This document shows, piece after piece, positions 13,631 to 44,217 of a DNA stretch of 64,000 bases. The stretch covers positions 102,734,001 to 102,798,000 of the forward strand of contig NC_083229.1 of the NCBI RefSeq assembly GCF_032191835.1. The letters are read 5' to 3'. The stretch is from Heteronotia binoei (lineage: Eukaryota). The notes beneath the pieces were generated by a model. It was given only the letters and a program-made list of their open reading frames with translations, had not been told where the DNA came from and ran no database searches. The number at the start of each line of letters is the position of its first letter. Within the stretch, counting starts at the first letter, position 1. Position numbers and translations under genes: made by a program.

Positions 13631-14309
13631 CTTGGCAGCCCTAGCACCTCAGCACTCCCAAAGTTTATACCTAAATATGACAGATCCTGAACCATTGTCA
13701 AGTTAAAATATAACAAGCTCTTGATCATTCTTTTATTCTGAATAAATGATATCACAAAGGAAATAGTGTGTCTTTCATTGCCGTACTTTGGTATAAAGCG
13801 GGAGGGGGAACCTTATCTTGTTGAATACAGAATTTGGAAAGCATTGTCCTTCTATACAGAAAAACAAGGCGATGAGCACTTCAGCCCACCAATCTCTCCA
13901 AATAAAGATAGTCCTTATTCCAAGGGGTGATGAGATCAGCAGAGGAGCTATTTACTGTTGCACCAACCCAGCAACAGTAGCTGAGAAAAGAGTAAAAATC
14001 TTTTTAATGGGATGTGTGGACTTATTGTTTGTCCCTCACTTATCAGAGTATTATTTATTTAAAACATTTCTATTCTGTCTTCACCCAAATAGTGTCCCCA
14101 AGGCAGTGACCATGGAAACATTTCAACATCAAAGCAACATTTAAAATAAAGTACATACAAAATGATGAAACTGTCCAATAAAACATATAAACACACTCAT
14201 AAACACAACCATGGCCAAACAAAACAAAACAGGTGAAATGACAGTGATAGAAGGAAACAGACAAATCTTCCTGGGGAGCCAGTTCCAATTTTGGTGCCAC
14301 AACCAAGAA

Positions 14310-14535
14310 GGCCCTTTCTCAGGTTGCCTCACATCTAGCCTCAGGTGAGTAGGGTACCTGAAGCAGAGCCTCAGAAAATGAGTGGACAGGTGGGTTCATA
14401 TGGATGTAGGCAGTCCTTCAGGTATGCTGTTGGAAGCTATACAGGGCTTTAAAGGTCAATACCAGCACTTTGAAATGACTTGGAAGCAAACTGGGAGCCA
14501 GTGTAGATGGGAAAAGAATGGAGTGTTATAGTCCC
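14310..14535 (-). mobile_element. L2-clade LINE ORF2 C-terminal fragment
   Basis: Reverse strand reads LHWLPVCF..FKVLVLTFKAL..LKDCLHPYEP with indels. Confidence 0.7.
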
Positions 14536-14934
14536 TGACTGTTAGTTGCCCTGAGTCTGCTTGCGGAGAGGGCAGGATAGAAATTTAAGGTAATAATAAA
14601 TATGACCATGTGGAAATGTAATAGCAACAGTGCAATAGAAGAAAGTTCCACTTCTTAGGAATATGGAGTCTCTGCTAGCACATATATATGACTGTGTTCC
14701 TTACTAATCTGCATAGCCCCCAGCAGGTCACCTTTAATTATTCTTATATGTTTGTTTTTAGAAAATGTATACATTATCTGTCCAGACACCTGTTTGAGGT
14801 AGCTCATAAAATAAAAGCAATAAAATAAAAAATAGCACAACAATTATCAATAATGAACAAGACAGGGCATAAAAGTGGCACAAAACAGTCAACAGCCTAA
14901 AATGGTATTCATACAGCAGTCCTCAGGCTAGACA

Positions 14935-15162
14935 GGAATCAGTGTAGCATAGTGGTTCCTGTGCCAGACTAAGATCTGGAAGACACGGGTTAAAAGCCCT
15001 GCTCTACCATGGAAGTTCACTGAGTGACCTGAGTCCAATCACACTCCCTCGGCCTAACCTACCTCACTTGTTATGAGGATTAAACAAAAGATAGGAGATC
15101 AATGTAAACTGGTTTGGGCCCCTGCTGGGGAGGAAGTCAGGGTATAAGTCAAGTAAATAAAT
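14935..15162 (+). mobile_element. MIR-like/L2-tailed tRNA-derived SINE
   Basis: Decayed A/B boxes, GGCCTAACCTACCTCAC..TTATGAGGATTAAA tail, TAAATAAAT end. Confidence 0.7.
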
Positions 15163-15424
15163 GTTTTGGCTTGGTGCTTAAAGGGCAGCAAGGTAGATGC
15201 TAAGTGAGCCTCAAGGAGGAGAGCATTCCAAAGGGGATGTCAGCACTGCAAATGCCTATGTTGCCATCCACCACATCTTTGTAAGCAAGAGCACAGAGAG
15301 CAGGGATACTGCAAAGGAGCTTAACTAGTGGCCTGGGCAGTACAGAAAGAGACAGTTCTTCAAGTACTCCAACTCTTAGTTGTTTGAGGTCTTAATAGTA
15401 ACAACAGTGTTAGCCATAGTGTGG

Positions 15425-15720
15425 TTATTTTTATTTATTTATTTACTTTCGATTTATATCCCGCCCATTCCAAATGGACTCAGGGCAGCTAACAATCATA
15501 ATAAAACCAACATCTCAATTTCAGGTATAAAATGATAAGACATAAACAATTTACAATTTAAAACAAAATATTGGTGCGATACAGAATCTTAAAGCATAGG
15601 AGGCTCAGATTGTATTAGACCTTCTATTTATCTGTTGGTGGTCTTCCGGTGGAATTGCTCAGCAGTATAAAAGCTGCAGTCTTCTCCCCTAGTTGCTATA
15701 GGCCTGTTTAACTGTTTTAG
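15425..15720 (-). mobile_element. L2-type LINE 3' end fragment
   Basis: TTTATTT...GATTTATATCCCGCCC...CTCAGGGCAGCTAACA is the reverse of the 3' end seen at 25900-25955. Confidence 0.55.
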
Positions 15721-16843
15721 TGAGAACTGCTTAGAACAACTCTACCTTGGTGTAAAAAAAATAAACTCTCTCTCTCTCTCTGTAATGTTATCTAATAGGC
15801 TAAAGAACATACAATCCTGAACACGTCCTTTCAGAAGTAAATCCCAATTTTTTTCAACTAGTCTTAATCCCAGAAAAGTGTTTTTAGGACTACTGCCTGT
15901 TTTACAGAACCTAAACTTTCTCTAGAAAACACAAATCAGAATCAACAGGAAATGACAGTACTACATTCATCCTGTACGTGATTAACTAGAATTAATAGTT
16001 CCTAAGAAAAGGGTATTTAACGGGACCAAAGCAAGCCTCACTGGAGAACACTCAATATTAATTGATCTCAAGACTAGCGTGTGCACTGCTGTCTTGTCTC
16101 ATTACAAAGAGGGTGGCATTCTCTGCACCTGTGGATGTAAGCATGAATGAAGCAGGTCTGATGTTGAAGATCATGCCTGCTTGAAGCAAAGCTGTCTTCA
16201 AGTGTGTATTTTGGTTTAAACATAAAATGTTATATGCAAGATGCTTAACTCCGACTCCTGAGTCTATCCCTTGTTTAAATATTGTATGTAAAAAGCTATA
16301 ATTCCAGCACTTGATCTCTGCAAAATAATGTGTATGCATGCTGTCTGTAAAACAAAGAATGTGCAGTAGCTGAGAATATAATTGTTGCTTTTAGCTGTAC
16401 CAAAAATAGCATGTGGCTTTAAAGTGGAGTTCTATATTGGTATTCAAATAATCCCATACATGCATCAAAAGCTGTGACTGGATATTGAGTATCCTGCTTA
16501 ACAGAATTTAGATTGATTAACAGATTTAAATTTATTCTTCTGAAGAGTGCAGGGAGGTTACATCATTTTAGACATCACTCTTCATAAATGTGAAATCAAT
16601 GGCTGACATCTATCCCTGAAGCATTGTTCATGTCGGATGCTAATGCTGTCTTCAAACAAGAGCACAATCAAAGGGGTTTGCTGCTTGGGTTTCCTAGATT
16701 AGGACCACAGTTTCTGATTTTTATTGTAAACAGGTTGCTGACCACTGCTGACCAATCATAATCTCAGAATTCTCATATCAAGTTAAAAGCTGAAACATTC
16801 ATGATACAATTTAAAAAGTGTTTGGGCAGAAGCAGCAAGGAGA

Positions 16844-17045
16844 TAAGGTTGGTAACCTCCATGTGGAGCCTGGAGATTTCCCAGTGTTACAGCTGATTTC
16901 AGAGTGACAGAGATCGCTTTCCCTGGAGCCAGTGGTCGCTTTGGAGGGTAGAACCTACGGCATTAGTTCTGGATGAAGTCCTTCCCTTCCCTTGGCTCCA
17001 GCCCCACATCTCCAGGAATTTCCCATCCTGGAACAGACAACTCTA
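16844..17045. mobile_element. AGGGTTGCCA-family MITE-like repeat, degenerate
   Basis: Homologous to 12293-12503. Confidence 0.7.
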
Positions 17046-17353
17046 GAGTGAAGGAAAGGAAGGCAGATCTTTTAAAAATTCCAAACATAATGCTTGTTTA
17101 CAGAACTGCAGCATTAGTACTACAGATTGTGAGTAAAGGCTATGAGCAAATAAAGTTTATATAGAAGGCATTCACATGATTTTATTATCAGCGAATGCTG
17201 ATGCTAATTTCAGGTAGAGGTACACAATGCAGTTAATTCTGTCAGATTTATTTTCATTTTCCAGAGGGCTAGGCTTTAGCAAAAACACAGGGATGCTGGT
17301 ATTTTCCATTGAACAAATGGGCATCAGTCACTCAGCCTAAGTTGATCACTTAA

Positions 17354-17578
17354 GGGAGGGACAGTGGCTCATTGGTAGAACATCTGCTTGGTAAGCAGAA
17401 GGTCCCAGGTTCAATCCCCAGCATCTCCAACTAAAAAAGGTCCAAGCAAGTAGGTGTGAAAAACCTCACTTTGAAACCCTGGAGAACCGATGCCAGTCTG
17501 AATAGATAATACTGACTTTGATGGACCGAGGATCTGATTCAGTATAAGGCAGCTTCATATGTTCATATATGTTCATAT
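17354..17578 (+). mobile_element. tRNA-derived SINE with CR1-like 3' tail (Squam3-like)
   Basis: A box TGGCTCATTGGTAG, B box GGTTCAATCC, tail CTGATTCAGTATAAGGCAGCTTCATATGTTCATATATGTTCATA; homologs at 52664 and 54468. Confidence 0.85.
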
Positions 17579-18256
17579 AATAAAGCTTACATTCTGTCTG
17601 GTCTCAGTGGAATAAGCATATACCTACTGCTGTCCCAATGAACTAAACTGAACTTCAGTATACTTTGATTTTAATTTAATTCCTGGCAAGCAAAAAGGTT
17701 TAAAAAGTAACCAGATAAGCCAATGTTCAAAGTTCAGCACTAACCTTACAATTTTCTTATGAGGGATCATTGTTCAATGGATTGTCTACACATTTGGTGA
17801 TCTGCTGTTAATTTTCCATGCTTCTTGAAATTTAGAATCTAGATGATCAGCAGGAATGATAAGGATCTCAACTTCAAAGTGCTGTTCTACAACTCAAGGA
17901 GAAGCTTTGCATTTTAAAAGGCCCCTTTGGAGAAGAGGCATTGGATGCAACTAGCTGTTTCACTGCTGTAATGAGGGAAGGGTCCCAGACCACTCAAAAG
18001 CTATACTGTAGATTGCAGAGTCTGCACAGACAAAAGCCATGGGGAATGAGGGCTGGAGTAAGGAGGCAAATTGAGTGTGACTGAATGAAAAAGCTGGGTG
18101 GCCCCAACCCTCCATCTTCTTAATAAGTATTTTATATATTTGTTGGGAAGGCAGAGTGTTGCTGGTCACAATGAAGGGGGGGGTGATATTTACCGAGAAG
18201 TTCTTTAATGCTTTTAGACTGTTGTTGAACAAAAGAGCTGTCTTTTGTTGCAGATC

Positions 18257-18638
18257 ATGGAAGAGCCAGAGCTGCCTGTGCTGCTAGTAAACGAAGTGGG
18301 AGGAATGATTGGAGTCTTAGAGGCACATCTGCCATTTCTGAAGAAACACTTTCGCCTTCTCACCATGAAGGAGTTTCTTGAAAACAAAGCCTATCTTGGT
18401 GTAACAGTTGAAGCAATTTATGTGTGGTGGCACAGACCAGTCATCGATCAAGAACTTTTGAAGAGCCTACCTCATTTAAAAGTGGTGGCAAGTTCAGGGG
18501 TAGGAGTGGACCATCTGGATCTGAAGCTGATCGCAGGATTTGGAGTCAGGGTGGCCAATACACCCCATGCTGTCTGCAGCAGCACCGCAGACACTGGGGT
18601 GGCACTGCTGCTGGCAGCTGCTAGAAGACTCATTGAAG
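18257..18638 (+). CDS. Dehydrogenase A coding exon 1 (acceptor at 18254)
   Basis: MEEPELP...SGVGVDHLD...NTPHAV...ARRLIEG; donor GAAG|GTAACA. Confidence 0.93.
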
Positions 18639-21600
18639 GTAACATTTCTTATGCTGTGCCTATTTCTTCAGTATTCCATTCCAATCCAATTACCGTTCCT
18701 TCAACGATTGTCATGAACAGGATAACACATTGTTTTTTCATATTGTATAAACTTTCACTTATTGCTCTCATTTGCAAAGAGTTAGTTTCACAATAGTAAT
18801 AGCTAATCGCTTGAGCCTAAGATTGTTTATAAAACACACCAATGTTTTATTTAATAGTTCTAAGCCAAAGATGTCCATATGGCAAAAAGGTTCAAATTCC
18901 TAAACATTTGCCAAGTTTTGAGAAACCTAGTGGGAGCCCCTTAGAGCTTATAGCCTTTTCCTTTGTGTGTTCACATAAGTTCCGCTATAGTCTGTGGAGC
19001 TTACCCCAATAAGTGCACTTAGACTTTCAGGATGACATCATGTGGATGCTTCTGAAAACAGTGCTGTTGTAAAGAAACCAAGGCAGAGCAAACTATTCAC
19101 ATGAAAGCACCTTTAGTTTCCTCTGAATGAGTCTTTGGAATACTGGTTTATTTACAAATATGAAAGTGGAGCACAATAGACCCAAATAGGCAACTGCAGC
19201 AACCACTAATACTGCTTCCTCCCTGCGCACACACACACACACAAAAAAGCAAATCTCTTGGGTCCTCCAGAATTCTTCCAGACTAGCGACTTATTTCTTT
19301 CCTCGTCTACCAGTGCCAGCAGTCTGAACTGTACATTTGGAGAGATAGCCAGACATCAAGAAATATTGATGTTTTTTATTAAGAGGTCAGGCACTCATTT
19401 GTCTATTGGAAAAGTCTGCTGCAATATGTTTATTATGCTCCTCAAGCTGGTAACACCATCCTCTTCTCAACAGGAGCTCTCATACCAAAAAGTCCCAGAC
19501 AGCCTCCATCCTATCCTAGAAAAAAGAGGATAACAAAGATGAAAACTATACATAATGAATGGTTAACTGTTTACATATTTACAAGGATATTTCTCCTTGA
19601 AACCTGTACCAAACGGAAGTAACTCCCCCCTTTGAACAGGATTAATTCCTGTCAAACAATTACAGACTGTTTGCCATTGTATCCCAAGTTCAAATGAGTG
19701 CTTCTTTAGAAGACAGTCTCTTCTTTGGCATCGTTTCCTGTTTCTCTTGAATGTATTAGCGTTTCCTAATCTTTATGGCCCCTTCCTACTCCCCATGAAG
19801 CCAATTTTCAAAGATGAATGGGTTTATCTTGATACTTTGTGTCATTGCTCAACACTCCACAAAGAGCTTGAGAGTGTCTGCATTTCCACCCCATGTTACA
19901 GATTTGGCTTTGGAGACCACCATTTGTTCTCTTCCACTGAATCCTTCATGAGGTACAGTTGCAAATGTAGAACTACATGGATGTGTGAGGAGGGAGGGGC
20001 ATGAATGAGTGAGGAGGGAGGGGAGAGGGAAATTGCTCCGATTATGGTGGAAACTCCGGGAGCAACCGTACTGCGGAATCAAACCACACGGAACAGATTG
20101 GGAATTGAATCCAGGAGAAATCCTCTAGTGCGGAATCAGGAAATCAGGCCTGCATGGAACAACCCTGGAGCAAAAGGAAGGCAAACGGCAAATGCGGAAT
20201 CACCCTAGATCTCAGACACAGCCAATTGTGCCATGTATTGAAGGCTGAGCTGTGAAAGAATTTTGCTGCTTGAACAGAAGGAGAAGATTTATACCCCACT
20301 CTTCTCTTTGAATAGAGTCTCAGAGCAGTTTACAATCTCCTTTATCTCCTTCCCCCACCCTGTGAGGTGGGTGGGGCTGAGAGAGCTTTCCCAGAAGCTA
20401 TTCTTTCAAGGACAACTCCTATGAGAGCTGTGGTTGACCCAAGGCCATTCCAGCAGGTGCAAGTGGAGGAATGGGAAATCATACCTGGTTCTCCCAGATA
20501 AGAGTCGGCACACTTAACCACTACACCAAACAGGAAGTAATATTCTAAGTAATTATTTCAGTTTAGCTGCTAATATGGGTTTTAAAGTTCCTGTCTTAAT
20601 AATAACACAATTGTAGCTACCCAGGTCTTCCTGGAGAATGGAAAGCCGTTCTACCCATTTGTACCTATTTCTTACATTGGGTACAAATTTTGAGAGAAGA
20701 GAAATATTCTTCTAAATATTGTAATTCTAATATATTTATCTGAAATGTACGGATTGCCTTGGAAACAAATCCCATTGATTTCCATGGATGAAAATCCAAG
20801 GAAAGATATTAAAGATTGAAACACTGCAGACATAAACATACATTGCAATCCCTTTTATTACAACCTTGTCTTTCTATAACTGTCTCTCTCCCCCCACCCC
20901 CCACTTTATTTCTTTGCCACATAGGTTGCCAGGTGGCTACTTCCCCAGACACTGAGTATTTCCCTTGTAACATGTTAGGAGACGAAGTCACTGGGGCTAC
21001 TCTGGGTATCATTGGAATGGGCAGCATTGGCTACAAAATTGCTCTGAGGGCCAGAGCATTTGAAATGAACATTCTTTATCACAACAGGAACAGAAGGTAA
21101 AGATACTTGTTGACCCATACAAAGTGCTTTTTTCTAATCCCCTCACTTCTGTTCCTTTTGGAAAAGGAATGTGTGTGTAACTAAATGGACTGATTTCAGG
21201 CATTAACAAACCCAACTGCTGTTTTTCAGGTGATGTGATCTCTTTGTTAAATATACTGAAGGGAGCCTAGATGATTGTACTTGATGGTGATGTTAGCTAA
21301 CCATATTAAAAAAGTGGATCCCAAAAGATTATTAGGGCCTGGCACACAACCATATTGTTATTCTTGAGCAGGGATCTCTGGGAAAGGGAGTGCATGTTAC
21401 AGTTTAGCAAGTGGCTGAGGAGCTTTCCCAGCATTTCAACTAATCCTCTTTTCATTATATGATGACGTCATGGCAACCTTCCAGGCAGGAGAGTTGGTTG
21501 GACCAGGAGACATCTCAGTTTTTAAGACCCATCTCCTTCTGAATTAGCAATTCCCAACTTTACTTTTGTTGTGATTAACTCCATTCTCACTGTAGTATTC

Positions 21601-24600
21601 TAAACAATATTTATGCCAGGACAGAAGTAAATGTTACAAAAAACACACACCTGATGCAGAAAATGATAAACGTATATGGTTTACTCTTCTGAAACGTCTA
21701 GCAGAACATAGTGAAAATCTTGGTGTCACGCTGTTTCTCTACCATGGGTCAGTACACAGAGGGACTTGAAGCCATATGACAGATGTGAACTCACAGCTGC
21801 TGTACAGCTACAAATCCCTGTGGTGATCAAATGCTAGATGTAACCACACGTTTGGACCAAAGTTGATGGCCAGAGAGTGGAAGGAAAAGGCATTTTCGTG
21901 TAGTTTCCATTTTCAGCACCTGCACTTTTAAAATACTATTGGAACATTCTGTTAATTTGGATAGTATTGCTTTATCTAAGCGACTGGATTTTTTGTTTTG
22001 TGCTATTTATAAAGAAATAAAAGTGTGTTCCAATTGTAGGCTACCTTAATTTAGAATGATTTTTGAATTGCACTGCAAACAAGATTAAAATCACCCATGA
22101 ATAAGACTATATCCATTTCCCTGTGACAGATATCTGTTGAATCAGGATACAAAACTGTTGCCCAGGATTAGGTCATATTGCCTCTGATGCAATGTGTGGG
22201 GGAACAGCAGCACACAAGGACTCAAATCACACAAGGAAGGGGGGATAGTTAAAGGATTGTTTGCTAAACTGTTTGCTGAACTGAAGAAGAAAAAAAATTG
22301 TAAAGGGAGGATGAAAGCTAAGCACTATCTTAGTCATTTAAAAAAATGGTAGAAATTTGCCTAGGTGGATGACCTTTGGCACCAGATCTAACTCTCTATT
22401 CTTCCTCAGATATAGAAAGATGTTATAGATAGGCAGGGGTCATTTCATAGAAAAAGAGCTGCCAGAGTTACACTTGCACTGCATGTCTCTCTACTTTGGA
22501 TTTTTCAGAACAGAAATTTCTAAAAGATGACCTAGTCAATCAATCAAACAGCAACCTACAATTCACTATCCAGGTATAAGAGGACACTTGTTAAAGTGTC
22601 TTGTTTGAACAGGTTCTCAGATAATGATCACAACAGCTGGGATCATATGAAGTAGCCAGCTGTAACAAAAATCTAGTTTTCCTATAAGTAAGTACTTGTC
22701 AAAGAGGACATAATGGCTATTTTCTGCCAGGAAAGAAGATGAAGAACTGGCTGTGAGTGCCTGCTATTGTGGAAAGATAAAAGATTTGCTCCAGCAGTCT
22801 GACTTTGTGATGCTTGCTGTCAATTTAACCCCTCAGACATACAAACTGATTGGGAAAAGGGAGCTGGAATTAATGAAACCAACAGCTACTCTCATAAATA
22901 TCTCTAGAGGTATGCAATGAAATAGCTGCTTTAAAAATATGCTTGAAGCACAGATTACTCCATAGGTTTCATACAAGCTGATCAATGTAATATGAATTGA
23001 AAACCAGTAACATTAATACGTACATTTATATTATCCTGTTGTTACAGGGATGCTTAGATTTAAAATTACTGGAGAAACTCTTAATATCTGATGAACTAGC
23101 AGGATTATCTTTTACAACAGATTAAATATTACTTCCAGAGTGTCATTGAGAATAGACACAGATACTATTAACCAATCGTTATAGACCAGATTTCATTGCA
23201 ATATCTAATTAAGCAAGCATTGTTTGAAAGCAAGTTTCTGTGCTGAGAAGCCCAAAAGTTATAGGATGAACTGATGAAAATACAACCCCCAGTTCAGATG
23301 GGTTAAAGGACAGGATGAAATTGAGAAGTTGATAGAGGGCTTACTCTAGGATGGTGGTCATACAAAATAATAATGCAACATAAGGCTATTTGTAATTGTA
23401 ACCATGCCTGTGTTCAAGGGAGGTTAATTTTCTAGTATTTGTTGATGATGACAGAGTCTGGCAAACTGAATTCATTTGTTGGGCATCACATCAGGATTAT
23501 TTTAATGCACTGTGCATTTAACAGCTAAGGGACCAAATATATAAGATGTGATGATTTTAGGAGAGTTCTCCAGAGAGTCCTTGGACAGTCTTCATTGTAC
23601 AAGCTGCAATGATTGTGGGAAGAAAAGCACTGCAGGCATCATAGGATATAATGATTCCGATAGTTTATATATGCCTTAAGCAGCATCCACACTAGCTCTA
23701 CATTGGCTATTATATTAAATGTATACTAATTTGTATTAAATGTCTTTTTACTTGGTGACTGCTGCACAGGGTCAGTTGTAGACCAAGATGCACTCGTGGA
23801 AGCTCTTCAGACTGATGTTATTAAGGGTGCGGCTTTGGATGTCACTTATCCTGAACCACTGCCCAGGTAAACGTCTGTTTTTCAGAGGGTTAAATATTTA
23901 AATGTCAACTAGCACTGTGTAAAAATGCAGAAGAGCATAAGAGATAAAAGCAGAGCCTGGCACCCCAGCCTTCTATCATAGCTTGCAAAAGGAAACAACA
24001 TGCTTCTATTCCAGACCAAAACCCAAAGGGAATAAATACTGTGTAGTGCTGTTAAATGAAGGTTAAGTCTGCAAGGTTCAATCTTATCAATCTGCAGAGC
24101 AATCCTGTGGTTCTAGTATGCAACAGCTTCACCACAGCTAAGCTTGTGTAATATAGCCTCCGTCCTACCAGTTCTCAGAAACAAAGAGATGATGCCAACG
24201 GCTACTCCCACAGCACCCATGGCAACTCTGCTGACACCCATTAATTACAGCGTATTGCACTGACAATGTGTACACACAATTTATCTGCTTCAAAAAACAA
24301 CAACAGTGCACAACCAGGGAGAAATCTGAGTGCCGTGGTTGGGAAGACAACAGCAGCAGACAGCTACAGGCATGACTTTACAATTTCCTTAGCCAGGATT
24401 CGAATCTGTTGTCTGGTTACACAGCAGCAGTCTGCTTGATGCCCTGCAGCCTGTTTGATCAAGGAACATTTTGCTAGCTACTTGGAGTCCATGGGGAGCA
24501 GCCTTTCCCCTCCCTGTCTCAGTGTTTTAGCATACCAGCGGCTGTGTTATGTGACATCACAGAAGAACAGCACCTGGTTTCAAACTGACAGCCAGGGCCA

Positions 24601-25161
24601 GAGAAGAAAGGACGAATGCCATTTCATACTTGACAGGCAGCCACTCACCTATCCTGGTGTATGGGATGAATTCATGGAGTACTCCTTCCCCCCTCCCACT
24701 TTAATTGGCTAGTGGGAGCCAATTTGAATTAACTAAACTGAAATGTCAAGGGTGCACTTGTTGCTCTTTAATTGCCATTTTGGCTGCGGTATGTTGCTGT
24801 AAGAGGGAATGAAACTGATAATCATAAATATATTTACCGTAATTCTCAGCGTGGGCAAATCTGTGGACACTTAAAGCCAAGGACTGGGGCTTCTTTTGTA
24901 TGGTAGAGAGCCCTACCTACTTCTTTTGAACTGAATGCTGTATTTGTTAGGATGAATTGACCTATCTGTCTTAACCACTTGTCTTTTTACTCTCTTCTTT
25001 TCAGAGATCACCCATTATTAAAATTAAGGAATGTTATTTTAACCCCTCATCTTGGTTCCAGAACACACAAAACCACTCATATGATGACTGAGGAAGTGGT
25101 AGAAAATATACTGGCTGCTCTCCATGGACTCCCAATGACTAGTGAAGTATTTCCTGACTAA
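18257..25161 (+). CDS. D-isomer-specific 2-hydroxyacid dehydrogenase, glyoxylate/hydroxypyruvate reductase (GhrB/2-ketogluconate reductase)-like, copy A, 328 aa; exons 18257-18638, 20925-21096, 22731-22909, 23770-23866, 25005-25161
   Basis: All GT/AG sites; 987 nt in continuous frame; motifs SGVGVD, NTP, GIIGMGSIG, YHNR, INISRG, LDVTYPEP, TPHLGS. Confidence 0.93.
20277..20531 (-). mobile_element. tRNA-derived SINE (MIR-like/L2-tailed relative)
   Basis: Reverse strand begins GTTTGGTGTAGTGGTTAAGTGTGCCGACTCTTATCTGGGAGAACCAGG and ends GGGGTATAAAATCTTCTCCTTC. Confidence 0.75.
20925..21096 (+). CDS. Dehydrogenase A coding exon 2 (172 nt)
   Basis: GCQVATSP...GATLGIIGMGSIGYKIA...YHNRNR. Confidence 0.94.
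22731..22909 (+). CDS. Dehydrogenase A coding exon 3 (179 nt)
   Basis: KEDEE...LLQQSDFVMLAVNLTPQT...MKPTATLINISRG. Confidence 0.94.
23770..23866 (+). CDS. Dehydrogenase A coding exon 4 (97 nt)
   Basis: SVVDQDALVEALQTDVIKGAALDVTYPEPLPR. Confidence 0.94.
25005..25161 (+). CDS. Dehydrogenase A coding exon 5
   Basis: DHPLLKLRNVILTPHLGSRT...EVFPD*. Confidence 0.94.
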
Positions 25162-37762: not shown

Positions 37763-38144
37763 ATGGCAAAGCAAGACTGTCCATATACACTAATCAGTGT
37801 AATAGGAGGCAGGGATGGAGTCTATGAAGATCATGTCGAGTTCCTAGAGAAACACCTTAAGCTTATCACCATGCAGGAATTTCTTGAAAATCAGAAAGAT
37901 CTCAGTCAAAAAATCCAAGCGATATATCTGTGGTTTAAAAAACCAGAAGCTACCAGAGAGCTCCTGCAAAGTTTGCCCAACTTAAAGGTGATTGCAAACT
38001 CTGGTGTTGGAGTGGATCACCTGGACTTGAAACTGATCTCCAGCTTCAAAGTTAAAGTGGCAAACACCCCATTTGCAGTTGCCAGTCCTACAGCTGATCT
38101 CGGGATGGCTTTACTGATGGCGTCTGCTAGGAGGATTGTGGAAG
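37763..38144 (+). CDS. Dehydrogenase B coding exon 1 (acceptor at 37760)
   Basis: ACCATGG Kozak; MAKQDCP...ARRIVEG; donor GTAAGA. Confidence 0.94.
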
Positions 38145-41100
38145 GTAAGACTGAGTGTCCCATTTGGATGGCTTTCCTTTCAAAATACATAGTTTCGTAT
38201 CTTGGGTCCAATGCAGTGTTTCCACAGATGGAATGATTTCCACTAGGTGAAATCATTCCATCTTACCTCCTCCTCGCTGTAGCCCCATGTCCCCCACCCC
38301 TTTTGTTCCTGGAAGGCCCCTAGCCTCCAGGAACAGTGGGGTTTTTTGGGGGTGTGTGTGTTATTTTGAGCTGAAACAGAAGGAGGAAGGTGAAAAAATT
38401 GATTTCAGGAAAATCATAATTAATGCCTGTGGAGATGTTAAACCATAGTAATAATCTATTGTGCATCTATTTCTATGGTTTTAAAAAAGAATCACACAGT
38501 GATCAGAAAACAGAATTTCTGGAGTCACCTTGTCATATCCTAGTCTTTAAAAGCACCCAAGGCACCATTATAGTCTCTTGGATTTTGAAGTCTGTTTGGA
38601 GAAGTAACTTTCTCATACACAAGTTCTGTAACTACCTCATGACCTTGCCTAGAAAAAGGAAGCGATCATGTGCCTGGATGCCACATACATACAAATCCTA
38701 AAGGCAGATGTGGCTCATACTATTGATCATATTTGTATAACTGGCTTGGGTTTCACTGGAAGCCATCTTGGTAATCCTGTTTTACTCCAGTTACAGTGTT
38801 TACAGTACAGTACAGATTGTCATCTGTTGCATTGCAACAGCCTAGTGTCCATAGGAGGAAGAAGTGCAAGTGTTGACTGAAGAGTGTGATAACTTTCTCC
38901 AACTGGAAGTTTCATGAAAAGGGATTGATACCCTGATTTTAAAATATTTGTGCTGGAAGTTCTGGCCACAAGCTTGATAGACAGTTCCAGCACTAATAAG
39001 GAACACAATGGTGTGTTCTGTGCAGGGCTTTTTTTGTAGAAAAAGCCCATCAGGAACTCATTTGCATATCAGGCCACACTTCTTGACATCACCATTATCT
39101 CACACAAGGCTTTTTAGTAGAAAAAGCCCAGCAGAAACTTATTTGCATATTAGGTCACACCCCCTGATGCCAAGCCAGCCGGAACGGCATTCCTGTGCAT
39201 TCCTGCTAAAAAAAGCCTTGGTTCTGTGATAGCCAGCTGAATATAGCCAGCTTTCATTCAGCTAATTTCCTTTCTTACTGCTGTTCTCATCCCACACAGC
39301 TGTTGTCCATATAGGTCCCATGATGCCCAGCATAGCCTCTAGTGGAAAAGCAGAATAGCACAGAAACTGGTGTACCCTTAACTTAATATGCTACTGTAAT
39401 CCTTAGGATCTTGTTACTTGAGAATGCAGATCAGTTCCATATAACATAAAGCAATTCTGTATACTGATTTTTTTGAAGTGTGGATTGCATACCAGACCTT
39501 TGGAGATCTGCTGTCTCCAAAAATACTACCAACTGTTTCTCACTTTTGTGTATTTTTATTTTTAGGTTATTATATTGCAGTTTCTCCTGAGACCAAATAT
39601 TTTAATGCTGACTGGTTGGGTGATGAAATCAATGGTGCAACTCTGGGCATCATTGGAATGGGACATATTGGGTACAAAATAGCCCAGAGGGCCAGAGCTT
39701 TTGAAATGAAAATTCTTTACCATAATAGGAACCAGAGGTAAACATTTATTTGATCAGATTTGTAAATATGTAACCAATTTATACTCATAGCTTGTATTAC
39801 TTCATTAAGTTCAATAATTGCTCATTTCTGTATATGTAGGCTTCAAATCTATATTTGTTTATTTGCATTACAGTCCACCTTTCTCACTGAGACTCAAGGC
39901 AGATTACACAGTGTAAGTCAATGCAATTAGTAGGGTGTGAGACATCTAATAAGCAAGGTAATAGGACTAAGATTACAGAAATCTGGAACACAAAATACAT
40001 ATTAGACATGGTATGTTACTCAAGGCAGAAGATGGTATGTATAAGTAGAAAACAATGCAGTGAGAGCAAGATAACACATAGAATGTTCTTGTTCCACATC
40101 TCCTTTGCATTGTTCTAACCCTCACAATGAACTGATGGTCTGTTGTCAATTTCTAAAATCTATAGTTGGCATAACGTTTTGGCAGATGACTGTGGTTTGG
40201 ATCCGGTCACCTCCCATGTTTCCTCTAATTTCTTTCCTCCCTATTGTGCAGAGCAGTTGACATCCTGAGCTGAATATAACTGCTGTAATCTTAAAATGCA
40301 ACACACCAAAGGGGTCTTAGCATTAAGCAATTGAAAAACCGGTTTTTCAGTTGCTTCGTAATCTTAAAATGGGCAGTGCAAAACTCCAGACTGGAGTCTT
40401 AAAATGGGCAGTGTGGCTCCAAACTGCTGTTGAACAGGGCTTCCTATGTTAATCAACAGCTGTTCAGATGCACAACTTAAAGGAAATATTGGTCTCCTCC
40501 TTGTAACTTGTCTGAGTCACATTGAATATTCAGGTCATAGGCATACATGTCACAAAGTGTTTTCAAAGATAAGAGATTCTCAAGGAATGAAAAGCTCTTC
40601 AGCAAATGACATTTTTTCAGTATACCAATTAATTAACTGACAAGCTAATTAGAGCTGTATTTGGTTTTTGTGTAGACCGGTGGACGAAGAACAGGCTGTT
40701 GGTGCTGTTTATTGTCAAAAGAAGGAAGACTTGCTCCAGCAGTCTGACTTTGTGATGCTGACTGTGGCTCTAACACCCCAAACGCGCAACTTGATTGGGA
40801 AGAAGGAGCTAGAGCTCATGAAACCCACTGCTACACTCATCAACATCTGCAGAGGTATAGCAAAAATGTCTTGTTCCTTATCATAAGGGGAGCTTCTTCA
40901 TTGTAATGAGCCTTGAAAAATAATTTCTGGTGATAACAAAGAATTTTTATGCAAAATAGTTTTTGGAAATGTGAAAACTGAAACAACTCTACCTTGGTGG
41001 ACAGTATTCCTAAACAGGTCTGAACGCTTTGAGGAAGGACAGAATATTTTCTCCCCCCCCCCCCATTTCCTCTTCTCCTTCCCCAGTATTTAAAAGGCTG

Positions 41101-44100
41101 TGTGTTCCCCTTCACCAGTACTTGAATACATGTCTGCATCCCTACAGCAGGAATGAATGCCCATGTCCTCCCTATAAGTGACAGGTTTAGAACACTGCTG
41201 GTAGTGGACTGAGGCTAGCAAAGAAACTGTGCAAAGGGAAAAAAAAGTTTAATTATCTTTTGCAAAGGTCTACAGTGTTCTGAAGCTCCCTGCAAAGGTC
41301 TACAGTGCTCTGAGTCTCTGCAGTATTTGCTACTATTCTGCTGTAATATGATGGTAGAAAGTGTGGTCAGAAAGCAATCAACTTACAGTGACCCCGTTTC
41401 AAAGCAAGAGACAAACAGGGATGGTTTCCCATTACCTGTTTCTGGGTAACAACCCTGGACTTTCTTGGTAGTCACTCCATCAAACTGCTAATCAGGGCCA
41501 ACCCTGAGACAGGATGAGCTCTGGCTAGCTGAGACCAATTAGGGTTGCCAATCCCCAGCTGGGGACAGGGGAATCCAAAGCACAACGCTTCCGTGAAAAC
41601 CAGCCTCAATAAGAACAAAACAGTACAAAAATTTTTAGCAAACAATGAATGCAATATGTTATATAAACACAATTTGGAACAGTGAATTCAATCAGTCTCT
41701 TACAAAATACAAGGAACATATTCACCAGGAAACCAGTTCCATTTCTTCCATGCAACTCAATGCCAACTCTTATTAGGAAAATCCAACTGAATTGGAACTT
41801 GATAACTGATGTCAAATCAGTCCAATATTTCTTGATATGCAGCCAGCAGTCCAAGATAGCAACAAGGTCGTGCTGGTGCCCTTGTAACGTGAAAGGCACC
41901 AAATTTTTGGCATAGCTGCTGGTGCCTCTCCTCAAAAAAGTCTCCCAAGTTTCAAAAAGATTGGACCAGGGGGTCCAATTCTCTAAGCCCCAAAAGAAGG
42001 AGCCCCCCCATTCTCCATTATTTTCTATGGAAGGAAGACATTTAAAAGGAGCACAGTCCCTTTAAATGTGATGGCCAGAACTCCCTTCAGAGTTCAGTCG
42101 AGCTTAACACAACCTTGCTCCTGGTTCCACCCCCAAAGTCCCCAGATATTTCCTGAGTCAGACCTGGCAACCCTAAGACCAATTCAAGGCAACTCTTATA
42201 CCATTCAAGCATGATAAAAGCACTGGGGAGAGTTTCATGTCAAATGCTTATCACTCTTCCACTGTTCCCAGGCTAAAAACGTTGCACCTTGGAATATTAA
42301 AGTGATCTGACAAAATTACACACCTCAGATGGGAGGGCAGAGAATCATCTTTTGGATCATATTCTTGATTGGCTCACACTGATCAGGGAGTCAGTGATTT
42401 AGTTCTCCTATAAAGTTAATTTACATCCATCTGGGAGAACAAAGAGAATTTACAACAACACTTGAAACAGCACACAAGGGACTGAGTTACAAGTTACTAG
42501 CCTGGGCCAATATTGCCACAGGGAGCCAAGAAACATCTCAATGCATCTCCTCTCTGTTGCTTTGTTACTGATTCTGATTTGAAGGTACTCATCTTGCTTA
42601 CATTTAATCCTGAATCAATTCATCCTGGAGAACACACATGGAGTTGGGAACCCACAATGCACACAGGTTGAGTTGCAAAATGCTAGTGGAAAGAAAATAT
42701 GCCACTTTTAGCAAATCGTTCACAGTTGCTCAGCTACATGCATCCCATGTAGGTGTGGCAAAGCTAGGTGGACTAAATATTAAATTCTTGTTCCAGCTGG
42801 AAAAAACCCCTCAACTGCTGGAATTTTAAAATCCTTGTTCTCTAGCATGCTGTTACTCATTAAGTCAATGTTATGGTTCAACAAACTTACTCTGCTTTGA
42901 ATTTAGGTCAGGTGGTTGATCAAGATGCCTTGGTGGAGGCACTCAAAAATGGAGTTATTAAGGCTGCAGCTTTGGATGTGACCTATCCCGAGCCATTGCC
43001 AAGGTAAAAACAATTAAACACGAAATGCTTAACCAGCATTCAGAATCAATAGTTTTATGTGTACTTCTGGCTCAAGTTACTTTGTTTGTGGCATAAATCA
43101 CTCTGTTTGGGATATTATCTATCTCAAATGTTCTCTAATGCTTCTTTCTTCTGGAATGGAACTTCCCTGCATTCCCCTCCCAGTACAGCCCAGTGGGACC
43201 CCCACCTCACCCCGATTCTGCTCCTGGGAATGAAGGGATCCTCATAGAGAGCATGGGGGAGGGAGAAAGGCAGTCTCTGCAGTGGGAGGAGAAAGGCAAG
43301 AAATGGCCCCGCCTGCAAAAGAAATGCCATTCCCTTGGTGTAAGTGCTGTTAGGGTTGCCAGCCTCCAGGTGGTGGCTGGAGATTTCCTTCTATTACCAC
43401 TGATCTCTCGGTGACAGAAATCAGTTCACCTAGAGAAAATGGCCACTTGGGAAGATGGACTCTATGGCAACAGGATACAAATGAATAAATAAATAAAAAC
43501 GCAATATGTGACTTGCCAACACTTGGCTCACAACACACACGGAGATACATGTATTTCAAAACTCATTTTAAGGCTTGGATCTCACTGTAGGCATGATGCA
43601 TGTGTAAGTGAAGGGAATACTATAGACCACATCTGAATTGGCCATTTTAAAAACAGTTGCCAGCAGACTTGCGGTAGTGACCTCAACTGGAGCTCAATTA
43701 CTGCAGTTGGTCCTTACTAAGCCAATCCAATTCTGCACACACGATCAAACTGATTCTTTAGAAGAGCGTTATTTGTAGTAGTGCCAATGAAGGAGAGCAG
43801 GTGGAGGTGCAGGTGAAGGAGAGCAGACTCCAGGTGGAGAATGCACAGCTTCCTGTCCTCCCACAATTATCCCTAAAGAATCCTGGGAAAAAAACTTCTC
43901 AGATTTTGCAGGGATGCAAAGTATCTTGAGACAAACAATACAACTTTGAAACAACCAGTCATTAAAACTTATATTAATCTCATTTCATTTTTGTAAGATT
44001 TTTAAATATTAAGAGTTAGTCTACTAAAATGTTACTTACATATCTGCCATTTTCCCCCTCCAGAGACCATCCTTTGTTAAAGTTGAAGAACGTCATAATA

Positions 44101-44217
44101 ACACCTCACATTGGAAGTGCAACTGTAAAATCCCGCCAGCTGATGATGATGAGCATGGTAGAAAGCATTCTGAATGGTGTAAATGGTCTTCCAATCACTA
44201 ATGAAGTACATGGGTAA
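37763..44217 (+). CDS. D-isomer-specific 2-hydroxyacid dehydrogenase, glyoxylate/hydroxypyruvate reductase (GhrB)-like, copy B, 327 aa; exons 37763-38144, 39566-39737, 40676-40854, 42907-43003, 44064-44217
   Basis: Exon sizes and phases identical to copy A (382/172/179/97); motifs SGVGVD, GIIGMGHIG, YHNR, INICRG, YPEP, TPHIGSAT; AATAAA at 44482. Confidence 0.94.
39023..39220. mobile_element. hAT MITE (CAGGGCTTTTTTTG family)
   Basis: TIRs; perfect TSD GTTCTGTG; sisters at 46328 and 51101. Confidence 0.9.
39566..39737 (+). CDS. Dehydrogenase B coding exon 2
   Basis: YYIAVSPETKYFNADWLGDEINGATLGIIGMGHIG...YHNRNQR. Confidence 0.94.
40676..40854 (+). CDS. Dehydrogenase B coding exon 3
   Basis: PVDEEQAVGAVYC...SDFVML...INICRG. 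Confidence 0.94.
42907..43003 (+). CDS. Dehydrogenase B coding exon 4
   Basis: QVVDQDALVEALKNGVIKAAALDVTYPEPLPR. Confidence 0.94.
44064..44217 (+). CDS. Dehydrogenase B coding exon 5
   Basis: DHPLLKLKNVIITPHIGSATVKSR...EVHG*. Confidence 0.94.

Follow-up and report, generated by a model that had tools for sequence, protein, structure and literature searches.

A stretch of 64,000 nucleotides from the genome of the gecko Heteronotia binoei (NCBI RefSeq assembly GCF_032191835.1, contig NC_083229.1, positions 102,734,001 to 102,798,000 of the forward strand; hereafter the window, with coordinates counted from its first base) is vertebrate DNA with spliced genes, two of which are tandem copies of a D-2-hydroxyacid dehydrogenase gene, copy A and copy B. 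Both encode the catalytic residues, and copy A differs from B at several positions that are tied to substrate choice in related enzymes. The question is whether A is an enzyme retuned to a different 2-keto acid, as a sequence-only reading of the window had proposed, a second enzyme with the same substrates, or a gene in decay. The answer that we favor is that A is an intact, selectively maintained member of an old clade found only in sauropsids, in which changes to the segment following the catalytic histidine have probably shifted the preference among 2-oxo acids.

The tandem genes and their specificity residues

Both genes are intact and lie on the forward strand, each with five coding exons that were read by eye and checked by script (Table 1). 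Every intron of A and B is GT-AG, and the first four coding exons have the same lengths in both (382, 172, 179 and 97 nucleotides), with a last exon of 157 nucleotides in A and 154 in B. The span 20925-25161 originally assigned to A covers exons 2-5 but starts downstream of exon 1, which encodes the substrate-binding domain, with W57-W58-H59-R60-P61 as its beta3-alpha3 loop. The two proteins are 65.7% identical, and their translations correspond to the H. binoei database proteins P0001 (A) and P0132 (B), named by NCBI on similarity as 'probable 2-ketogluconate reductase' and 'glyoxylate/hydroxypyruvate reductase B-like', respectively. Pfam domains 2-Hacid_dh (PF00389) and 2-Hacid_dh_C (PF02826) are present on both, giving the two-domain fold.

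There are several features that the two proteins share and several that set them apart. First, the catalytic Arg244 (NISRG in A), Glu273 (YPEP in A) and His292 are retained in each rebuilt protein, in agreement with the sequence-only reading, and these residues together with G155-x-x-G158-x-G160 are invariant in 90 of 90 family sequences. Second, A reads Asn143-Met144-Leu-Gly in the dimerisation loop and H-L-G-S-R-T-H-K-T-T from the catalytic histidine (with Ser295), and B reads Asp143-Trp144-Leu-Gly and H-I-G-S-A-T-V-K-S-R (with Ala296 and Arg301); all of the motifs first reported for the two copies (for A NMLG, Arg at His+4 and Thr at His+9) are thus present in the rebuilt genes. Third, the motifs that the sequence-only reading gave for comparison are accurate, since human GRHPR (chain 2h1s) has P-H-I-G-S-A-T-H-R-T-R with His293 and Arg302 in a HMMER alignment, and E. 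coli GhrB has D-W-Y-G at 137-140 and P-H-I-G-S-A-T-H-E-T-R (translated K-12 genome, L007:12311-13285).

Published structures indicate what these positions do. In human and Pyrococcus GRHPR the arginine at His+9, the serine at His+3 and a tryptophan from the partner subunit hold a conserved water that touches the 3-hydroxymethyl group of D-glycerate, and this Arg-Ser-Trp network has been proposed to govern substrate selection (PMC4749974). The GHRB subfamily was delimited by Matelska et al. (2018) as GhrB/GRHPR-type relatives with a Gly-Ser motif, an Arg-X-X-Met motif (in most, not all, members) and a large aromatic residue contributed by the partner subunit (Trp141 in GRHPR). Within it, activity on hydroxypyruvate is correlated with the presence of Gly-Ser, larger C2 substituents are thought to be kept out by the arginine and methionine of Arg-X-X-Met, and lack of the partner tryptophan coincides with 2-keto-D-gluconate activity (PMC6303947). 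The residues tied to substrate choice are then Arg(His+9), Ser(His+3), the partner tryptophan, Arg-X-X-Met and the loop around Leu59 of GRHPR (PMC6303947; PMC4749974).

Heteronotia A has the Gly-Ser motif after the catalytic histidine (Gly294-Ser295) and does not have Arg-X-X-Met, its Thr301-His-Met-Met304 having lost the arginine and retained the methionine; B has Arg-Gln-Leu-Met. When specificity-linked positions are mapped with HMMER (Pyrococcus Met52/Leu53/Ser54 align to residues 58/59/60), A and B differ at 58 (Trp/Phe), 59 (His/Lys), 60 (Arg/Lys), 296 (Arg/Ala), 301 (Thr/Arg) and possibly 144. In an AlphaFold2 (AF2) model of A, with a mean predicted local distance difference test score (pLDDT) of 86.6, helix alpha5 begins at residue 298.

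Distribution and age of the rebuilt segment

A and B belong to a separate GhrB-like family of vertebrates that is biochemically uncharacterised and distinct from GRHPR. That A might be GRHPR itself was rejected, as it is 34-35% identical to human GRHPR and 62-92% identical to members of the 'probable 2-ketogluconate reductase' family. The best NCBIfam models are both below their equivalog cut-offs (glyoxylate reductase PRK13243, 251 against 455 bits; GhrB PRK15409, 216 against 492 bits). In protein searches the family is found in frogs, turtles, crocodilians, birds, squamates and many mammals, including pig, rabbit, pika, bats, sloth, tenrec, tarsier and marsupials; human and mouse are not among the matches listed (best 120 per search), and no search was aimed at their absence. 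A paper on the liver transcriptome lists the chicken gene and enters its function as '?' (PMC6839265).

A tree of 90 non-redundant full-length family members (FastTree, LG+gamma, Shimodaira-Hasegawa-like supports, rooted on frog, with no vertebrate GRHPR sequence among the members) places mammals (0.986) apart from sauropsids (0.924), and the latter fall into three paralog clades, A (0.998), C (0.992) and a weakly monophyletic B group, with A and C united at 0.978. Heteronotia A nests within clade A. Because A, B and C each contain squamates, turtles and archosaurs, the duplications predate the lepidosaur/archelosaur split.

The rebuilt segment is a property of clade A as a whole. Position 296 (His+4) is basic in all 25 clade-A sequences (Lys 17, Arg 8), spanning squamates, turtles, crocodilians and birds, and is Ala in 62 of 64 sequences of clades B and C and mammals. 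Position 301 (His+9) is never Arg in clade A (Thr 17, Ala 4, others 4), with Arg in 33 of 35 B sequences and 14 of 14 mammals; an arginine at His+10 is kept in many members of clades A and C. Position 293 is Leu in clade A and Ile elsewhere, 304 is Ile in 22 of 25 (Met elsewhere), and the serine at 295 is lost in most non-gecko members (Ile/Ala/Cys/Val). The clade consensus at the Arg-X-X-Met site is Thr-Arg/Tyr-Met-Ile. In exon 1 the loop at 57-61 is fixed as W-W-H-[K/R]-P, with Trp58 in 25 of 25. Changes in the clade-A consensus relative to the rest of the family are concentrated in residues 292-305 (10 of 14 positions, against 47 of 314 elsewhere; Fisher p = 7e-6). The reading of the substitutions as peculiar to this one genome is accordingly rejected. 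Of the two sets of residues that the sequence-only reading had singled out for a test of fixation, the basic His+4 and the missing His+9 arginine are clade-wide, but N-M-L is confined to geckos.

As the His+4 and His+9 changes are present in all 25 sequences, from geckos to birds, they predate the lepidosaur/archelosaur split. They were first described as an arginine that had moved by five residues, and A does have Arg at His+4 and none at His+9, but clade C has no arginine at 301 (Thr/Leu/Ile) and retains Ala296, and the loss and the gain were therefore probably separate events. The distribution of states among the clades, on which alone the order of events is argued, suggests that the His+9 arginine was lost before A and C separated and that the basic residue was gained on the stem of A.

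A is also under constraint. All of the A and B genes extracted from geckos and other lizards have the five-exon structure seen in Heteronotia. Ratios of nonsynonymous to synonymous substitution rates (dN/dS) were calculated pairwise from exact coding sequences for A of Eublepharis, Gekko and Hemicordylus and B of Eublepharis, Sphaerodactylus and Tiliqua (Paroedura A, Tiliqua A and Hemicordylus B have no gene on record), and are 0.15-0.23 for A and 0.16-0.20 for B by the Nei-Gojobori method (NG86), and 0.19-0.32 and 0.21-0.24 by the Yang-Nielsen method (YN00). At positions at least 95% conserved across the family, Heteronotia A has one departure (Thr50) and B has two. Private substitutions with dN/dS near 1, the signs of decay named in the sequence-only reading, are not what is seen; since the changes are clade-wide and dN/dS is far from 1, A is maintained by selection, and the description of it as an intact enzyme stands on its open frame, splice sites, catalytic triad and dN/dS like that of B. 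A pseudogene is likewise rejected. A looser version of this idea, that A is a relaxed or decaying duplicate whose odd residues represent damage, could draw on the variability within clade A of Phe140 and Trp144 (at least 90% conserved elsewhere), and on the neighboring clade-C paralog having truly been destroyed in Heteronotia. It is nonetheless extremely improbable, given a frame and splice sites that are intact in every gecko, lizard, turtle, crocodilian and bird sampled, a dN/dS equal to that of B, and the single departure from family-invariant positions.

Table 1. Features of the reductase locus in the window
Feature	Position	Strand	Details
Clade-C relic	13675-13702	+	last 28 bp of its exon 4, then intron 4
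Copy A	18257-25161	+	328 aa
Copy A coding exon 1	18257-18638	+	ATG at 18257, donor GT at 18639; Met1 to first base of codon 128
Copy A exon 2	20925-21096	+	dimerisation loop and GxGxxG dinucleotide-binding motif
Copy A dimer-loop residues	20972-20974 (Met144 codon)	+	Tyr139, Phe140, Asn143, Met144
Copy A exon 3	22731-22909	+	terminates in N-I-S-R-G, catalytic Arg244
Copy A exon 4	23770-23866	+	Y-P-E-P, catalytic Glu273
Copy A exon 5	25005-25161	+	rebuilt betaG-alpha5 segment; stop TAA 25159-25161
Copy A exon 5 codons	25048-25050, 25060-25062, 25075-25077, 25084-25086	+	His292, Arg296, Thr301, Met304, respectively; also Ser295
Copy B	37763-44217	+	327 aa; canonical tandem paralog
Copy B exons	37763-38144, 39566-39737, 40676-40854, 42907-43003, 44064-44217	+	exons 1-5
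Copy B codons	39613-39615, 44107-44109, 44134-44136	+	Trp144, His292, Arg301, respectively

The clade-C paralog lies directly upstream of A in Eublepharis, where the gene order is C-A-B on one strand, and is destroyed (deleted or decayed) in Heteronotia, which retains A-B. The 3′ region of Eublepharis C can be aligned with window 13675-18125, exon 5 lying within a gap of that alignment (14744-14776), and in the same comparison exons 1-3 have no match in the window. Clade-A-type proteins were not seen outside sauropsids in a search with the C-terminal part (residues 278-328), which gave only 28 candidates and is weak evidence for their absence. B-type proteins are present in snakes (Liasis, Erythrolamprus, Candoia) and no snake A-type protein is among the matches listed (best 120); snakes may have lost A. 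Bird proteins P0121-P0124 (467-563 aa, e.g. Gallus 509 aa and Zonotrichia 508 aa) are gene models that fuse two adjacent paralogs, which probably reflects erroneous read-through annotation across the tandem array.

The dimer loop and Trp144

The sequence-only reading also held that A had lost the tryptophan that the partner subunit contributes to the pocket. Trp144 is indeed Met in A, but its equivalence to Trp141 of GRHPR is not established, because HMMER alignments place Tyr139, Phe140 or residue 144 opposite the tryptophan. With A, or exon 2 of B, aligned to Pyrococcus glyoxylate reductase, residue 144 is opposite Phe143, five residues after Trp138, and Tyr139 falls on Trp138 with Pro141 on Pro140; in the alignment of B with a Thermus enzyme it is Phe140 that falls on the Trp of the W-H-P motif. 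With the family profile, or B residues 100-175, against the Pyrococcus enzyme, Trp144 is placed on Trp138, followed by a five-residue insertion. The spacing of the motif also bears on the matter, as the network tryptophan of the Pyrococcus enzyme is seven residues before a conserved glycine and has Pro at Trp+2, and residue 144 precedes that glycine by only two residues; we take the spacing to be the same in human GRHPR and to be six in phosphite dehydrogenase. From these alignments, Trp144 may possibly be the structural counterpart of GRHPR Trp141, but more probably is not.

The distribution of Trp144 is nonetheless informative. Outside clade A it is present in 63 of 63 sequences of the non-redundant set, the sole exception in a larger set being the Emys B copy (D-L-L-G). 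Within clade A, N-M-L-G is found in the geckos Heteronotia, Gekko, Euleptes, Eublepharis and Sphaerodactylus (Paroedura has N-I-I-G), and the tryptophan is kept in other lizards, most turtles and alligator; birds have Phe, Ile or Leu, Chelydra has Leu and Elgaria has Arg. All but the last of these replacements are hydrophobic, fitting a packing position. Phe140, which is at least 90% conserved outside A, is Phe in 13, Cys in 9, Leu in 2 and Ser in 1 of the clade-A sequences. Trp144Met is a later gecko addition in the dimer loop.

In bird A copies both aromatic residues of the dimer loop are changed, Y-C-E-A-D-F/I-L-G replacing the Y-F-x-x-D-W-L-G of other clades (20960-20974 in Heteronotia A). 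These changes are independent of the gecko Trp-to-Met replacement, and suggest repeated release or retuning of the loop after loss of the His+9 arginine.

Altered constraint at positions 140 and 144 might also be expected if clade A had moved to a mainly non-catalytic or sensor role, with the loop serving to bind a ligand or partner. There is precedent for this in the 2-hydroxyacid dehydrogenase (2HADH) superfamily in CtBP, which is among the structural relatives. It is very unlikely for A, however, as clade A shows no variation in the catalytic Arg/Glu/His, in GxGxxG or in the cofactor-loop residues, and there is no extra domain, the length and exon structure being equal to those of B.

Substrate preference and comparison with known reductases

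A would be an NAD(P)H-dependent D-2-hydroxyacid dehydrogenase (2-oxoacid reductase) with hydride transfer as in GRHPR and GhrB, Arg244 holding the 2-oxo acid and His292/Glu273 serving as the acid-base catalyst. What differs is the specificity segment: the His+9 arginine of the GRHPR water network and of Arg-X-X-Met is replaced across the clade, mostly by Thr or Ala, and the motif methionine by Ile in most members, and the family's usual Ala at His+4 has given way to a fixed Lys or Arg, together with the W-W-H-[K/R]-P form of the beta3-alpha3 loop. In the mechanism that we propose, the side chain of Arg296 would reach the pocket, and the preferred 2-oxo acid would most likely have shifted away from hydroxypyruvate/glyoxylate, with the gecko Trp144Met added later.

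Several observations weigh against this reading. The segment 292-305 was picked after the differences in it had been pointed out, and a 14-residue pocket set defined beforehand from the literature (the Pyrococcus tunnel) is not significantly enriched, with A-specific changes at 4 of 14 positions (p = 0.21); most of the set is catalytic and invariant. Heteronotia A, by retaining Gly-Ser and Met304, is less diverged than the A copies of birds and turtles. The AF2 monomer model of A has a pLDDT below 50 at 125-134 and 139-145 and is unreliable for the dimer loop, as is expected because the loop needs the partner subunit. Our searches of the literature turned up no biochemical work on the vertebrate GhrB-like family. 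Of the proposal that A is retuned to a different 2-keto acid, the differences from B at specificity-linked residues are observed and the change of substrate is what we infer from them.

Some of these points are what would be expected if A and B shared their chemistry and their glyoxylate/hydroxypyruvate-type substrates, and were both kept for dosage or for tissue-specific or regulatory subfunctionalisation, with loop changes that are near-neutral or compensating. No change is seen in the catalytic triad, in the main-chain carboxylate binders (S-G-V-G) or, in geckos, in the Gly-Ser motif; the predefined pocket set is not enriched for changes, and GHRB enzymes are promiscuous (PMC6303947). However, mutation of the equivalent network residues in phosphite dehydrogenase alters substrate affinity (PMC4749974), and the basic residue at 296, Trp58 and the absence of Arg301 have been fixed for some 280 million years or longer, which argues for selection for a new state and not for drift. 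Shared substrates are therefore unlikely, although the idea carries real weight, and a shift in 2-oxo acid preference remains the explanation that we favor.

What the new substrate might be is a more speculative matter. One suggestion, which we regard as doubtful, is that the clade-A enzymes form a reductase specific to sauropsids, acting on a 2-oxo acid with a second anionic or strongly polar group (dicarboxylic or sugar-derived), and that in these enzymes the fixed Lys/Arg at His+4 would be a new anchor, replacing the Arg-Ser-Trp network that senses the hydroxymethyl group. If true, there would be a D-2-hydroxyacid pathway in reptiles and birds that is absent from mammals.

Irrespective of the substrate, vertebrates have a whole family of GhrB-like reductases beside GRHPR that is labelled in databases by similarity alone, with three paralogs in sauropsids, one of which acquired its rebuilt specificity loop before the divergence of lizards and birds and has retained it. 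This points to a possibly unrecognized D-2-hydroxyacid activity in the metabolism of reptiles and birds. Residues 58-60, 293-305 and 140/144 constitute a defined set for testing substrate choice in the GHRB subfamily, for which natural variants exist in gecko A (Ser295/Met144), bird A (Ile295/Phe144) and clade C (neither the His+9 arginine nor a basic His+4).

The nearest solved or modelled structures, from Foldseek and from phmmer/profile searches of the PDB, are an E. coli TkrA/GhrB model and the Pyrococcus, B. subtilis and human GRHPR structures (34-37% identity, template modelling (TM) scores of 0.76-0.80); Foldseek matches to solved and modelled 2HADH enzymes as a whole have TM scores of 0.76-0.81. 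The top structural match is E. coli GhrB (TkrA/YiaE; a glyoxylate/hydroxypyruvate/2-ketogluconate reductase), for which the TkrA model 9a5q has a TM score of 0.80 and 36% identity. Its dimer loop aligns without gaps to that of the family, including D-W-x-G, and H-I-G-S-A-T-x-x-x-R is common to GhrB and B; unlike GhrB, A has Met for the D-W tryptophan, Arg at His+4 and Thr at His+9, and the family is encoded by eukaryotic, intron-containing genes. The best sequence match among solved structures is the B. subtilis glyoxylate/hydroxypyruvate reductase 9m0t ('probable 2-ketogluconate reductase'; E = 3.8e-58 with A, 8e-79 with the family profile), for which we found no paper in the literature; it has the Y-H-N-R-x-R cofactor loop of the family and, unlike A, a canonical H-I-G-S-A-T-A-K-V-R.

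Human GRHPR (2gcg/2h1s) and the Pyrococcus enzyme (2dbq, 5aov, 6bii) have the same fold and catalytic triad as A and B. B retains Ser(His+3), Arg(His+9) and Met(His+12), like Ser296/Arg302/Met305 of GRHPR, whereas A is without the network arginine; the Trp-x-Pro motif of the GRHPR dimer loop has no clear counterpart in either copy, and the position of GRHPR Leu59 (residue 59) is His in A and Lys in B. The closest relative of all is clade C (e.g. P0101 of Eublepharis), the sister of A, which, like A, lacks Arg at His+9 and has an x-R-M-x-T pattern after it, and which adjoins A in Eublepharis, but differs in having Ala at His+4, Trp144, Thr at His+3 and an F-E-C-R-P beta3-alpha3 loop. A is thus a variant within a well-known enzyme superfamily and not a new kind of system.

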